From the NCBI RefSeq assembly GCF_000737315.1, contig NZ_JMCB01000017.1:124001-188000 (forward strand): DNA of 64,000 nt, written 5' to 3'. How positions within the stretch are numbered: the stretch's first letter is position 1; each line of letters begins with the position of its first letter. Of this stretch, positions 128 through 14,973 are shown piece by piece. The notes beneath the pieces were generated by a model. The model made no database searches. It saw only the letters and a list, made by a program, of their open reading frames with translations, and was not told the DNA's origin. Position numbers and translations under genes: made by a program. Source of the DNA: Hyalangium minutum. GTDB lineage: Bacteria > Myxococcota > Myxococcia > Myxococcales > Myxococcaceae.

Positions 128-1015
128 TCAGATGTTCCAGCGGATCATGCCCTGGAGCACGTTCTCGGTCTTACCGGTGATGAGGTACCGGTTGAAGGCG
201 AGCTGGTACTCGAAGCCGGCGTAGAGCTTGGCCGGGGTGAAGCCGATGGGCTTGCCGAAGTCCCAAAGCAGCTGGGGCTGGGACAGGAAGAACCGGTTGC
301 CCTTCTGGCCCGCGAAGTTGCCCACGCCCTCGCCCTCGCCGAACAGGCCCGTCTGGAAGAAGCCGCCGAAGATGAAGTCCTGGCTGGCGATCGAGAACGA
401 CTTCTGCCACGCCGCGCCCACCTGGAAGTCGATGCCCTTGAACACGCTGTCGTCACGGATGACCGTGGTCACCGTCACGAAGTCGAAGAACGGCTGCTTC
501 AGGCTCCACTGCAGACCGTAGTAGTTCAGCATGCCGAACTTGGAGACGTGCTCCATCTCGTACTTGATCTCCAGGTCCGCGATGGGGCCCCAGTTGAACT
601 CGCGGCCGGCGATCTTCTCGCCGATCTTCTTGGGGGACACCGTCGTGGTGATGCCGCCGAAGAAGCCGCCGCGCTCGTTGGCGCGATCCTCCTCACCCTT
701 GGTCTTGGAGTTGGCACCGTTCCAGGGGCCCGTGATGTCGTAGTACAGGAACATCGTCCCGTACTCCCAGGCCTGGAACGCCTTGATCGACAGGAGGGTG
801 CGCGCGGCCCGGCCGTTGAAGTCGTCGTTGAAGCAGTCCACGGCGCCGCGGTAGCGGCCGTAGAGGATCTCCTGGCCCGCGGGACGCTTCACGTTGTCCT
901 CTTTGCCCGTCCAACATGGGGCGTGGAGAACCTCGAACCACACGCCCGCATGGGCATTGATCGGCGAGAGAAAGACGGCGACGAGCGTAGCGAGGAACAG
1001 AAGATTGCGAGTCAT
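128..1015 (-). CDS. Tsx-like nucleoside-specific outer-membrane channel
   Basis: Sec signal peptide (…PINAHA), amphipathic beta-strands, Tsx-like segments (YGTMFLYYD, FGGFF, QPQLLWDFG, LYAGFEY), C-terminal WNI; downstream of nucleoside phosphorylase. Confidence 0.65.
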   Translation of the reverse strand: MTRNLLFLATLVAVFLSPINAHAGVWFEVLHAPCWTGKEDNVKRPAGQEILYGRYRGAVDCFNDDFNGRAARTLLSIKAFQAWEYGTMFLYYDITGPWNGANSKTKGEEDRANERGGFFGGITTTVSPKKIGEKIAGREFNWGPIADLEIKYEMEHVSKFGMLNYYGLQWSLKQPFFDFVTVTTVIRDDSVFKGIDFQVGAAWQKSFSIASQDFIFGGFFQTGLFGEGEGVGNFAGQKGNRFFLSQPQLLWDFGKPIGFTPAKLYAGFEYQLAFNRYLITGKTENVLQGMIRWNI

Positions 1016-1109
1016 GAGTCACCCCTCCCAGGTGGCGCGAGGGATCTCGCACGAGACCCGCCACGTCATCAAGCACTCATGACACGTATCAGGATTTCCT
1101 CTAACCGCT

Positions 1110-2426
1110 CTACTCCAGCCGCTCCACGATGAGCGGCCGAGGCGCCGGAGCCTGCGGGCCGAAGCGGTACGCCGCCAACAGCCGCGCCTTCACGTCCTGG
1201 AGGGGGCCCGCGTCATTATAGTGCACGCGCACCACCGGCTCGCCTGCCTTCACCGGCTCGCCCACCTTGCGCAGCAGCGTGAAGCCCACCGCTGGATCAA
1301 TCCGGCTGTCCACCCGCTGCCGTCCCGCCCCCAGCGCCACCGCCGCCAGCCCCACCGCCTCCGTGTCGATGCCCGTGACGAAACCGTCACCTGGCGCCAG
1401 CACGTCCGCCGTGGCCTTCGCCTGCGGCAACCGGCTGTAGTCATCAATGGCGAGCGGATCGCCGCCCTGCACCTGGACAATCTCCTTGAGCTTGCGCAGC
1501 GCGCTCCCGTCGTCCATGGCGCGCTGCAACAACTGCCGCGCCTGAGCCTCGTTCGCCGCCTTGCCGCCGAGCACGAGCATCTCCGCCGTGAGCGCCAGCG
1601 TCACCTCGGTGTAGTCCGCCGGTGCCTTGCCCCGGAGCATGTCCACCGCCTCAATCACTTCGAGGGCGTTGCCCACCGCGCGTCCCAGCGGCTGATCCAT
1701 GTCCGTGATGAGCGCCGTCACCTTGCGCTTCATCTGCGTGCCGATGCCGATCATCGTCCGGGCCAGGGCGCGCGAGTCCTCCAAGCGCTTCATGAAGGCG
1801 CCACTGCCCGTCTTCACGTCCAGCACGAGCGCGTCGATGCCCTCCGCCAGCTTCTTGCTCATGATGGAGCTGGCGATCAGCGGCAAGCAGTCCACCGTGG
1901 CCGTCACATCCCGGAGCGCGTAGAGCTTCTTGTCCGCGGGAGCCAGCGTGGCCGTCTGCCCGATGAGGCAGGCCCCCACATCCCGCACGAGCCGCCGGTA
2001 GTCCGCCACCGAGAGGTCCACCTTGAAGCCAGGGATGGACTCCAGCTTGTCCAGGGTCCCGCCCGTGTGCCCCAGGCCCCGGCCGGAGATCATCGGCACG
2101 GGCACGCCACAGGCCGCCGCCAGCGGCGCCAGGCTCAGGGAGACCTTGTCCCCCACTCCACCCGTGGAGTGCTTGTCCACCTTGATGCCGGGCGTCTCGG
2201 AAAGGTCGAGCACCTCGCCAGACTCGAGCATGGCCTGTGTCCAGGCGCCCAGCTCCACGGGGTTGAGCCCCTTGAAGAAGACGGCCATGCACATGGCGGA
2301 CATCTGGTAGTCCGGCACGTCACCGCGGGTATAGGCGGCAATGAACTCGCGGATGGAGTCCGGATCCAACTCCCGGCCATCCCGCTTGGCTTTGATGAGT
2401 TCGTAGGGTCTCACGCTTGGGGCCAT
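1110..2426 (-). CDS. deoA: Thymidine/pyrimidine-nucleoside phosphorylase (start may be GTG 2414)
   Basis: DKHSTGGVGDK, SGRGLGHTGGTLDKLESIPG, SIMSKK motifs. Confidence 0.95.
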   Translation of the reverse strand: MAPSVRPYELIKAKRDGRELDPDSIREFIAAYTRGDVPDYQMSAMCMAVFFKGLNPVELGAWTQAMLESGEVLDLSETPGIKVDKHSTGGVGDKVSLSLAPLAAACGVPVPMISGRGLGHTGGTLDKLESIPGFKVDLSVADYRRLVRDVGACLIGQTATLAPADKKLYALRDVTATVDCLPLIASSIMSKKLAEGIDALVLDVKTGSGAFMKRLEDSRALARTMIGIGTQMKRKVTALITDMDQPLGRAVGNALEVIEAVDMLRGKAPADYTEVTLALTAEMLVLGGKAANEAQARQLLQRAMDDGSALRKLKEIVQVQGGDPLAIDDYSRLPQAKATADVLAPGDGFVTGIDTEAVGLAAVALGAGRQRVDSRIDPAVGFTLLRKVGEPVKAGEPVVRVHYNDAGPLQDVKARLLAAYRFGPQAPAPRPLIVERLE

Positions 2427-2473
2427 AGCCTACCCCTTCCATCGGGTCCATCATCTGGTAGATACGCCTTCCC

Positions 2474-13378: not shown

Positions 13379-14724
13379 GCTCGCGCCTGTGGCCCTTGCT
13401 GGCCCTGCTGTTGGCCGCCGCGTGCAAGGAGCCTCCTCCGGCCCCGCCCGCGCCGCCGCCGGCCACGCGCCCCGCCGCTCCGAAGCACTTTTTGGGCAAC
13501 GCGCCGGACGGGAAGCTCCACATCTACTTCCTCGACGTGGGCCAAGGAGACTCCGCGCTCATCGTCTCGCCCGAGGGGCGCACCGTCCTCGTCGACACGG
13601 GCCCGGCCACGGCGGTGAACCACCTGGTGAACCGGCTGCCGGAGCTGCTCGCCGCGCGGCTGGATCTGGTGGTCCTCACCCACCCGTCGCCCGAACACTA
13701 CGGCACGCTGAGCGCGGTGCAGAAGATCGCGGATCCGCGCCGGCTGCTCGAGCCGCAGCTGCCCGAGACGCCCTCGGATTACGACGCCCTGCTCACGACG
13801 CTGGGCTCGTCGGGAGTGGAGATCTTCTCGCCCGCGCCCAACCCGGCCCAGCCTCAGGAGCTGACGCGCCTACCGCTGGGCAAGGGGGCGGAGCTGACGG
13901 TCCTGTGGCCGCGTGCGCCCACCGAGCCCTTGGTGCAGCTGCAGGGGGAGAAGCGCGCGCAGCATGAGGCCAACTCTATCGTCCTGCGCCTGACCTATGG
14001 GAAGACCTCGGTGCTCTTCGTGGGCGACGCTCGCGCTGAGACGGAGGCCGCGCTGCTGAAGCGTGGGGCGGAGCTGAACTCCACGCTCCTGAAGGTGGGT
14101 GGGCATGGGGCGGACTCGAGTACCACCCAGGAGTTCCTCCGGAAGGTGAAGCCGCAGGCGGCCATCATCAGCGTGGGCGGAGGCAACAAGCTCGGGGTTC
14201 CGGCGCAGGCCGTGCTGACCCGGCTGAAGGAGGAGAAGACGGCCCTCTTCCGCACCGATCAATACGGCGAGGTGCACGCGATGAGTGATGGCACGCAGTT
14301 CGTGCTCACCACGCAGAAGCTCGCGCCGGGCGAGGCCACCAACACCCAGCATGTCTTCGATGCCCCGGAGGAGCAGGCGCTGCAGGTTCCGACGCCTTCC
14401 GTACCCGTGGCCGAGAAGCCAGAGCCGAAGGTGGTGCCCGCGAAGGCCGTCGTCCCCAAGGCGAAGGAGGGCGAGGACCTCTCGCGGTTCGGCAAGGTGG
14501 TGGACATCGACACGCTGGGCGCCAAGGAGCACGGAGGCCGCCCGGAGAAGAAAGGGGCCCCAGCGGGAGGCGAGAAGTACTTCGCCAGCAAGAATCGGCC
14601 GATTTTCCACAAAGCGAGCTGCCGCAGCGTCAAACAGATCTCCGATGCGAACCTGCGTGAGTACAGCTCGCGCGAAGCTGCGCTAAAGGACAACAAGACG
14701 CCCGCCAACGACTGCAGGCCATGA
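13375..14724 (+). CDS. Lipoprotein ComEC/Rec2-type MBL-fold paralogue with degenerate metal site
   Basis: Lipobox LAAAC; DVGQGDS kept, but THPSPEH, KVGGHG and NKLGVP replace the metal-binding motifs; ATGA overlap with the previous gene. Confidence 0.82.
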
Positions 14725-14733
14725 GGATCGCCC

Positions 14734-14973
14734 ATGCGTAAGGCCACCGTGGACCGCTTCGAGGAAGAGCTGGCCGTGCTCATCGTCGACGGGCAGCAGG
14801 TGACCTGGCCCCGCGCCAACCTGCCTGCGGAGGTGCACGAGGGTGACGTGATCGATCTCGACACGGGGACGATCGACACGGAGGCCACCTCGGAGCTGCG
14901 CGAGCAGGTGCGGCAGGCCCGGAAGCAGGCGAAGAAGAAGAAGCCCGCGCCCACAGGCAACTTCGACCTCTGA
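14734..14973 (+). CDS. DUF3006-like small protein
   Basis: ATVDRFEEELAVL…LPAEVHEGDVI pattern; this family is commonly next to ComEC-like MBL genes. Confidence 0.8.
   Translation: MRKATVDRFEEELAVLIVDGQQVTWPRANLPAEVHEGDVIDLDTGTIDTEATSELREQVRQARKQAKKKKPAPTGNFDL

Follow-up and report, generated by a model that had tools for sequence, protein, structure and literature searches.

In the deo regulon of Escherichia coli (deoCABD, tsx), deoxyribose-phosphate aldolase (DERA, or DeoC), thymidine phosphorylase, purine nucleoside phosphorylase, and the outer membrane channel Tsx follow a single pathway logic. Aldolases of the DERA family also occur with bacterial microcompartments (BMC), and the BMC type named SPU is reportedly also to be attributed to Axen (2014). 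In SPU compartments, a DERA with an N-terminal extension is the signature enzyme, the acetaldehyde that it produces passes to an aldehyde dehydrogenase (AldDH), and DNA-derived deoxyribose 5-phosphate is the proposed substrate (PMC11585597, PMC8217296, PMC12747264). Compartments of the SPU type have also been described from Asgard and Myxococcota lineages (PMC12747264). All SPU DERAs carry this extension, which has ∼70 residues and a long amphipathic helix, whereas DERAs unconnected with BMCs lack it (PMC11585597). The HO compartment, modeled on Haliangium ochraceum, is the shell on which structural and engineering work on BMCs chiefly relies and the main shell model of synthetic biology, yet what it does natively is still described as enigmatic (PMC8217296). 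According to the survey of Sutter et al. (2021), a type I HO satellite locus consists of two BMC-P genes and an aldolase, the listing for Hyalangium (DSM 14724) includes an HO main locus, and some HO genomes encode a distal pfam01791 protein whose N-terminal extension resembles an encapsulation peptide (EP), consistent with nucleic acid catabolism in myxobacteria; the authors proposed that this distally encoded, EP-bearing DeoC is loaded into the HO BMC (PMC8217296). Here, we describe a 64,000-nucleotide stretch of the Hyalangium minutum genome (contig NZ_JMCB01000017.1, positions 124,001 to 188,000; hereafter, the window) in which a gene for such a DERA stands together with genes for nucleoside uptake and breakdown, with genes for exported hydrolases related to the nuclease domain of the competence protein ComEC, and with an HO-type satellite.

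We favor, with moderate confidence, the reading of this locus as a myxobacterial supercluster that serves to scavenge and burn nucleosides and is physically joined to an HO-type BMC satellite locus. The pathway enzymes, the importer type, the SPU and HO compartments, and the idea of an EP-bearing DeoC that feeds the HO BMC with DNA-derived sugar have all been published before. The new element is that the satellite, the tagged aldolase, the importer, the phosphorylases, and the exported ComEC-like hydrolases are physically joined, and our literature search found no description of this clustered arrangement. A link to a BMC had been singled out as unusual in the original prediction, an earlier reading of the same DNA; the link is real, but as an idea it goes back to Sutter et al. 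(PMC8217296), and a BMC specialist would find the locus little surprising. This locus and its relatives bring the tagged DERA, the HO satellite, and the upstream part of the nucleoside pathway together, and what had been suggested in print in a single sentence thereby becomes testable in culturable myxobacteria.

Genes were called by G+C content at third codon positions (GC3) in the window, which has ∼68% G+C overall, and their products were annotated with Pfam (66 window products scanned), NCBIfam, and PDB sequence searches, with AF2 models and Foldseek for folds. This procedure reproduced the gene layout of the original prediction at its coordinates (Table 1), including both divergent junctions (2427-2473, a 47-bp gap, and 11993-12100, ∼100 bp), and the Pfam, NCBIfam, PDB, and fold searches agree with it on a coherent gene set for nucleoside uptake and catabolism. 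The reverse-strand operon at 8092-11992 is convergent on the importer operon. The prediction had gone too far, however, in calling the locus complete, for it is without a 5′-nucleotidase, an AldDH, BMC-H and BMC-T shell genes, and a canonical DeoB. Its borders (128-14973) were also drawn too narrowly: the locus runs on the left into a purine nucleoside phosphorylase gene and on the right to genes for a major facilitator superfamily (MFS) transporter, an OsmC-like protein, a class II aldolase, and two BMC-P proteins (17882-20834). Gene order was compared with contigs or loci of relatives, which carry labels beginning with L: L082 and L166 are from Hyalangium rubrum, L165 is Stigmatella-like, L081 is Haliangium-like, and L084 is a 95%-identical metagenome contig. 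The named relatives nearest to the window's products are Hyalangium species. On the left edge, the seven visible codons of the purine nucleoside phosphorylase (MGLYEQV) agree at 7/7 positions with the start of the PNP_UDP_1 gene that follows the barrel orthologue in L166 (MGLYEQVQ) and at 6/7 with the corresponding start in L165 (MGLYEQIQ); in both relatives, genes for a PilZ protein, a cytidine deaminase, and an amidohydrolase come next.

Table 1. Features of the nucleoside and microcompartment locus, in window coordinates
Feature	Position	Strand	Evidence or remark
Purine nucleoside phosphorylase (PNP_UDP_1), start, first 7 codons	1-22	-	MGLYEQV; gene runs off the window
Tsx-like outer membrane beta-barrel, 295 aa, candidate nucleoside channel	128-1015	-	Signal peptide ...NAHA/GV
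Thymidine/pyrimidine-nucleoside phosphorylase (DeoA/Pdp type)	1110-2426	-	PF02885 + PF00591 + PF07831
Bmp/PnrA-type binding lipoprotein	2474-3697	+	PF02608, 226 bits; lipobox LLGAC
Tandem ABC ATPase	3751-5208	+	Two ABC_tran stretches
Two BPD_transp_2 permeases	5168/5243-6313 and 6306-7235	+	Pfam
Conserved 183-aa protein without family, end of importer operon	7523-8074	+	Pfam, NCBIfam, and lax Pfam blank
Signal-peptide beta-rich protein ending ...GWRF, last gene of deoC operon	8092-8766	-	No family
PGM/PMM-family phospho-sugar mutase, 584 aa, four domains; candidate deoxyribose 1,5-phosphomutase	8834-10588	-	PF02878/02879/02880/00408
DksA/TraR C4 zinc-finger protein between deoC and mutase	10637-11029	-	PF01258
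Deoxyribose-phosphate aldolase (DERA/DeoC), ∼95-aa N-terminal extension	11054-11992	-	TIGR00126
MBL1, stand-alone ComEC-type metallo-beta-lactamase (MBL) hydrolase, 425 aa, candidate DNase	12101-13378	+	Sec-type signal peptide, intact metal motifs
MBL2, lipoprotein paralogue of MBL1, 449 aa, degenerate motifs	13375-14724	+	Lipobox LAAAC
DUF3006 small protein, no signal peptide, Lys-rich tail	14734-14973	+	PF11213, 57.5 bits
Two low-GC3 ORFs without family, the first with lipoprotein-like signal	15097-17863	+	Between DUF3006 and MFS
MFS transporter	17882-19093	-	Downstream in BMC-P/aldolase operon
OsmC-like protein	19106-19612	-	Downstream in BMC-P/aldolase operon
Class II aldolase	19640-20308	-	PF00596, 140 bits
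BMC-P (EutN/CcmL) pentamer genes, two	20305-20574 and 20571-20834	-	PF03319, 87 and 95 bits
Zn-ribbon + GYF_2 protein, long low-complexity middle, head of BMC-P operon	20844-22691	-	Pfam

The aldolase is a DeoC equivalog by its score of 263 bits against TIGR00126 (cut-off, 117 bits; residues 100 to 308). Ahead of the catalytic domain, residues 1 to 95 (11710-11992, reverse strand) comprise an amphipathic helix of ∼30 residues, in which hydrophobic residues are spaced i, i+3/4, and i+7, then a variable linker and an invariant Cys block. This extension is kept in 31 DeoC orthologues, with R21, V22, R25, C37, C63, C67, C70, and C76 invariant, and the five cysteines form a block between the helix and the aldolase domain (PC ... 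C-x3-C-x2-C-x5-C). The AF2 model has a helix at residues 6 to 34, a low-confidence linker, and then a TIM barrel. A PF01791 domain behind an N-terminal extension with an amphipathic helix is what has been described for the DERAs of SPU compartments (PMC11585597). The Cys block finds no mention in that paper on SPU DERAs (PMC11585597), and our literature search found none elsewhere; it may be a metal or Fe-S site. Outside the Myxococcaceae, the closest DeoC relatives, on metagenome contigs of other lineages (L093, L097, L115, and L119), carry the same type of helix, and their genes have two BMC-P genes as immediate neighbors, joined in L097, L115, and L119 by a class II aldolase gene. Farther relatives adjoin BMC-P in loci that resemble SPU-type BMCs (L126, L150-L154, and others), and the BMC-adjacent relatives have a C...CxxCxxC pattern.

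The satellite itself forms one operon at 22691-17882 on the reverse strand, which encodes the Zn-ribbon/GYF_2 protein, both BMC-P proteins, the class II aldolase, the OsmC-like protein, and the MFS transporter. PDB matches of the BMC-P proteins are EutN/CcmL structures, including the HO shell (5v74). An adjacent PF03319 pair with PF00596, and no PF00936 among the scanned products of the 64-kb window, is the composition of a type I HO satellite. The locus thus shares with the HO BMC the satellite of two BMC-P and a class II aldolase. [quoted passage not shown] With the SPU BMC it has in common a DERA with an amphipathic-helix extension, together with the class II aldolase found in Myxococcota versions (PMC11585597, PMC12747264). 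Unlike an SPU main locus, however, it is without an RpiB-type pfam02502 partner, BMC-H, AldDH, and PTAC among the 66 products scanned, its DERA has the invariant Cys block, and genes for uptake, phosphorolysis, and a candidate nuclease are clustered with that DERA. An HO-type main locus found in L168 holds shell genes and an AldDH only and no signature enzyme, which fits a signature enzyme encoded elsewhere. A search with an HO BMC-H query did not single out the Hyalangium main locus, BMC-H being too conserved to sort by taxon. The Zn-ribbon/GYF_2 protein may be part of the compartment system. A C-terminal EP on the class II aldolase was also considered and rejected, as the tail is within the normal length of the family.

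Could the DERA instead be cytosolic, its extension binding metal or serving regulation, and the cluster an ordinary deo-like regulon with BMC-P genes nearby by chance? Five invariant cysteines suggest a metal or Fe-S site over a simple EP, AF2 confidence in the extension is low, the same DeoC is encoded in L083, L164, and L167 with no BMC-P within 10 kb, and the Corallococcus orthologue is without the Cys block. Yet where the Cys block is lost, in L002, the helix is kept, and this helix resembles the EPs of DeoCs in bona fide BMC loci (L093, L115, L119, and L126). In addition, SPU DERAs always have such an extension and non-BMC DERAs do not (PMC11585597), and Sutter et al. also arrived at encapsulation (PMC8217296). 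We therefore consider a cytosolic DERA quite unlikely and retain the joined nucleoside and microcompartment system as the preferred reading.

That reading draws on gene order, which the original prediction had made a test of its own. The layout recurs in Corallococcus, H. rubrum, a Stigmatella-like relative, and several contigs of metagenome-assembled genomes, but much of this recurrence is plain collinearity among close relatives. The most constant unit is DeoC-DksA-mutase-barrel (L001, L002, L082, L084, L088, L091, L164, L172, and L173), and the position of the DksA/TraR gene is kept in L001, L002, L082, L084, L088, L164, L172, and L173. The importer and pyrimidine phosphorylase genes are adjacent in the window, L002, L082, L084, L088, and L165/L166, and L164 and L173 have the importer by itself in this place, seen in part. 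Two BMC-P genes lie within 10 kb of DeoC (≤10 kb) in the window, L082, L084, L172, and L173. The Zn-ribbon/GYF_2 gene adjoins BMC-P in L082, L084, L172, and L173 (in L173 by position only) and is one gene off, behind a TPR gene, in L097. In L082 and L083, class II aldolase and DUF3006 genes adjoin the MFS gene; L172, for which no class II aldolase was called, has DUF3006 beside it. Two distant loci are rearranged in instructive ways: L083 reads aldolase II, MFS, MFS, DUF3006, MBL, MBL / DeoC ... mutase, barrel, with no BMC-P or importer nearby, and L097 reads Zn-ribbon/GYF, TPR, BMC-P, BMC-P, aldolase II, DeoC, x, pyrimidine phosphorylase, purine phosphorylase.

Flanking genes of unrelated function (RNase H-like, CT398/Zn-ribbon_9, and CarboxypepD_reg) are also collinear in the window, L082, L172, and L173; close-relative synteny is therefore weak evidence, and the whole adjacency might be a conserved chromosomal segment of the Myxococcaceae/Archangiaceae that has no functional meaning. 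The weight is carried by the rearranged recurrences in the distant lineages L081, L083, and L097. Sub-combinations of the locus reappear there in new arrangements, with DeoC, BMC-P, class II aldolase, and both the pyrimidine and purine phosphorylases in L097 and with the Bmp-ABC importer, the barrel, and a 5′-nucleotidase in L081, and the enzymes form one known pathway, so that mere collinearity appears very improbable to us.

Divergently from deoC, the locus encodes what had been predicted to be two exported nucleases. Both are ComEC-type, channel-less proteins with export signals, but only MBL1 looks active, the motifs of MBL2 being degenerate. Their matches to the ComEC model TIGR00361 are confined to its C-terminal third (positions 441 to 663; E values of 1e-34 for MBL1 and 1e-30 for MBL2) and score 119 and 106 bits, below the cut-off of 190 bits, and in the PDB MBL1 matches the ComEC beta-lactamase-like domain (E value, 1e-29; 30bt_A and 9ic4_A). 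In ComEC, this MBL domain is a metal-dependent nuclease (PMC12455585, PMC13539106, PMC5031224). The likeness to ComEC/Rec2 thus lies in an MBL domain of the ComEC subtype (E values of 1e-29 to 1e-34), whereas the OB fold and the transmembrane competence domain are missing and in their stead come a signal peptide or a lipobox, a linker rich in Pro and Ala, and a tail of ∼45 residues with conserved H/C/C positions; one paralogue has moreover lost its metal motifs. Neither protein has a polytopic channel domain or an N-terminal OB fold, and no competence channel domain occurs among the genes scanned at 128-22691, which upholds the earlier statement that the locus holds no competence membrane channel.

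In an alignment of four MBL1/MBL2 orthologue pairs, THPHLDH, HHG, and GHP are kept in all four MBL1 proteins, while in MBL2 the second motif varies (THPSPEH, THPAADH, THPDPKH, and TVAHPEH) and HHG and GHP are lost. Because of this degenerate motif 2 and the loss of HHG and GHP, we read MBL2 as probably a non-catalytic or altered paralogue, that is, a pseudo-enzyme. The original prediction had placed the digestion of DNA outside the cell; MBL1 could, however, end up in the periplasm or in the medium, and MBL2 is predicted from its lipobox to be a lipoprotein. The shared tail, FH-x3-C ... R..A ... DC-x-P, spans 13229-13378 in MBL1 and 14572-14724 in MBL2; the four best PDB hits of its profile are all the Ada N-terminal zinc domain, aligned end to end, at E values of only 0.14 to 0.3, which makes the match a lead, not a result. 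When the threshold was relaxed, Pfam gave nothing usable for the tails of the MBL proteins, the extension of DeoC, the 183-aa protein, or the second barrel. A DUF3006 gene follows the MBL gene or genes in L002, L082, L083, L084, L172, and L173, and our literature search found nothing on DUF3006 or on an exported ComEC-type MBL/DUF3006 module. We regard the exported ComEC-type MBL proteins that stand alone, together with DUF3006, as candidates for nutritional DNases; if confirmed, this would bear on the recycling of extracellular DNA by predatory and saprophytic soil bacteria.

MBL and DUF3006 genes stand divergently beside DeoC in 10 of the 15 informative loci, including L083, and the pair is absent beside DeoC in the remaining 5 (L003, L086, L089, L164, and L167). 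Such absences are to be expected if the nucleoside catabolism and BMC parts of our reading are right and the MBL proteins and DUF3006 do not serve feeding but are periplasmic or surface DNA-processing factors that merely lie beside deoC, in natural transformation, in the remodeling of extracellular-DNA matrix in swarms or fruiting bodies, or on some other phosphodiester substrate. The degenerate catalytic motifs of the MBL2 lipoprotein point the same way, as do the facts that the only characterized relatives act in DNA uptake and that DUF3006 has no known function and drew no mention in our literature search. However, the divergent MBL/DeoC junction persists in L083, where importer and BMC-P are not nearby, the locus has no ComEC channel, ComEA, or ComF, and a nuclease would yield precisely the substrates of the neighboring pathway. 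On balance, a role apart from feeding seems unlikely, and we keep the exported hydrolases within the nucleoside-scavenging system.

Uptake would begin at the outer membrane with the 295-aa barrel, which had been predicted as a Tsx-like porin. The designation may hold for the fold but does not hold for the sequence: the protein gave zero Pfam, NCBIfam, or PDB sequence matches, even with a 30-sequence profile, and does not belong to the Tsx family PF03502 by that search. Its AF2 model (pLDDT, 80.7) has as its best PDB fold match Tsx with bound thymidine (1tlw; Foldseek E value of 1.7e-6, TM scores of 0.53/0.60, root mean square deviation of 6.4 Å, and 10% identity), ahead of the next barrel by ∼100-fold in E value. 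Orthologues across the Myxococcota are 59 to 65% identical. In L081, a 65%-identical barrel is encoded by the fifth and last gene of a Bmp-ABC operon and is followed by a 5′-nucleotidase gene. A nucleoside channel is our best reading of the barrel. The 5′-nucleotidase of L081 (726 aa, 8911-11091) would supply the step that is missing from the window's locus.

The neighboring phosphorylase is a DeoA equivalog, with 579 bits against NF004490 (cut-off, 269 bits) and 566 bits against TIGR02644 (cut-off, 409 bits). Across the first divergent junction, the predicted BMP ABC importer was confirmed, with a Bmp lipoprotein, a double ATPase, and two BPD_transp_2 permeases. It shares the gene set, the usual order, and the fused double ATPase of PnrA/Bmp importers (Treponema PnrA and the Bacillus NupN-NupOPQ type), but its only NCBIfam match, to a putative B6-binding BMP protein, falls below the cut-off (117 versus 400 bits). 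The ATPase frame is open from 3643 and has no ATG, GTG, or TTG before 3751; Pfam matches the protein from residue 1 onward, which aligns with model position 4, and in H. rubrum the orthologue has 7 additional residues. The true start is probably upstream at a non-canonical codon, and the anomaly suggests either such a start codon or a sequence error. Orthologues of the 183-aa protein at the end of the operon occur in L002, L082, and L084, and a gene of equal size occupies the equal place in L165/L166.

The mutase that would join the phosphorylases to DERA had been called a phosphopentomutase. It is a phospho-sugar mutase, but its pentose specificity is not borne out, for it belongs to the PGM/PMM family and the role is suggested by the operon only. 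It falls in the alpha-D-phosphohexomutase superfamily, not in DeoB, with no NCBIfam equivalog at cut-off and no DeoB-type phosphopentomutase match. An EP on the mutase was rejected, since its N-terminus is what we take to be typical of the family, going by PgcA- and PGM2-type sequences. Among its PDB relatives is a phosphopentomutase of the PGM/PMM type (9ix8), so that this activity is known within the family. The small signal-peptide protein at the end of the deoC operon, which is always encoded after the mutase gene in relatives, is likely a small outer membrane barrel. Taken together, the locus has DeoC, thymidine phosphorylase, and, cut off by the window edge, a purine nucleoside phosphorylase in common with the E. 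coli deo regulon; its barrel, whose best fold match is Tsx, may be the counterpart of the channel there. The locus differs in having a PGM/PMM mutase in place of DeoB and a Bmp/PnrA ABC importer in place of NupC/NupG, in a barrel with no sequence similarity to Tsx, and in a DeoC with a putative targeting extension.

From family memberships, export signals, and gene order, which are what was observed here, we infer every further step of the following route. MBL1 would cut DNA outside the cytoplasm, perhaps with MBL2 and the Ada-like H/C/C tails of both MBL proteins holding on to it. Nucleosides would next be released by a phosphatase or nucleotidase that is not linked to the locus; for their import, the Tsx-like barrel would serve at the outer membrane and the Bmp/PnrA ABC importer at the inner one. 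Thymidine phosphorylase and the adjoining purine nucleoside phosphorylase would then yield deoxyribose 1-phosphate, and the PGM/PMM-family mutase would convert it to deoxyribose 5-phosphate. The N-terminal amphipathic helix would carry DERA into the HO microcompartment, where the enzyme would split deoxyribose 5-phosphate into glyceraldehyde 3-phosphate and acetaldehyde, and the shell would confine the acetaldehyde until the AldDH of the main HO locus, encoded elsewhere, makes acetyl-CoA. A bolder version, which we offer as a conjecture and hold to be possible but doubtful, takes the HO BMC to be a deoxyribose 5-phosphate metabolosome with the satellite-linked, EP-tagged DERA as its signature enzyme. 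In the Myxococcaceae/Archangiaceae, it would be the end point of a DNA-to-acetyl-CoA route that starts with a new class of exported nucleases derived from the ComEC MBL domain (an active enzyme, a pseudo-enzyme lipoprotein, both with Ada-like zinc tails, and DUF3006 as a possible cytoplasmic inhibitor), with the Cys block of DERA as a metal or Fe-S module on which encapsulation or activity would depend.

Besides the collinear flanks and the loci that lack the MBL pair, several observations weigh against a joined nucleoside and microcompartment system. Nucleotidase, AldDH, BMC-H, BMC-T, and RpiB families are represented by 0 of the 66 window products scanned with Pfam, and the HO main locus of the source genome, which lies outside the window, is assumed; in a type I HO system, such a locus would carry BMC-H, BMC-T, a third BMC-P, and AldDH. 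AF2 confidence for the N-terminal helix of DeoC is modest (pLDDT, 52 to 67), and the Tsx match of the barrel is at fold level only, with its 10% identity and TM scores of 0.53 to 0.60. The mutase may be a general phosphoglucomutase. Among the matches listed in its genome scan, orthologues on other Myxococcota-named contigs with 45 to 57% identity (Sorangium, Chondromyces, Vulgatibacter, Kofleriaceae, and others) are without these neighbors, and mutases of Lachnospiraceae and other Firmicutes are ∼40% identical. Those matches were mostly from distant Myxococcota and from Firmicutes, and the scan served as a negative control for gene context, not as a family survey.

Between DUF3006 and the MFS gene, the two low-GC3 ORFs at 15097-17863 are present in L084 and absent from H. 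rubrum L082. They are a lineage-specific insertion outside the system and may be a mobile toxin/immunity-like pair. Scans of the locus for regulatory signals returned zero promoter-like sites, terminator-like sites no commoner than in shuffled sequence, and no riboswitch with Rfam. The sole Rfam match of the scan was bacterial RNase P RNA class A at 39271-39666 on the forward strand (298 bits). A stretch of lower G+C content at 32 to 40 kb encodes an AAA/STAND-like ATPase (777 aa) and then a PD-(D/E)XK + DUF2357 protein (32977-36928, forward strand), a pair that looks like a restriction or defense island. Farther along, at 40111-45636 on the forward strand, lies an RND efflux operon for an outer membrane factor, an HlyD-type adaptor, and an AcrB-type pump.

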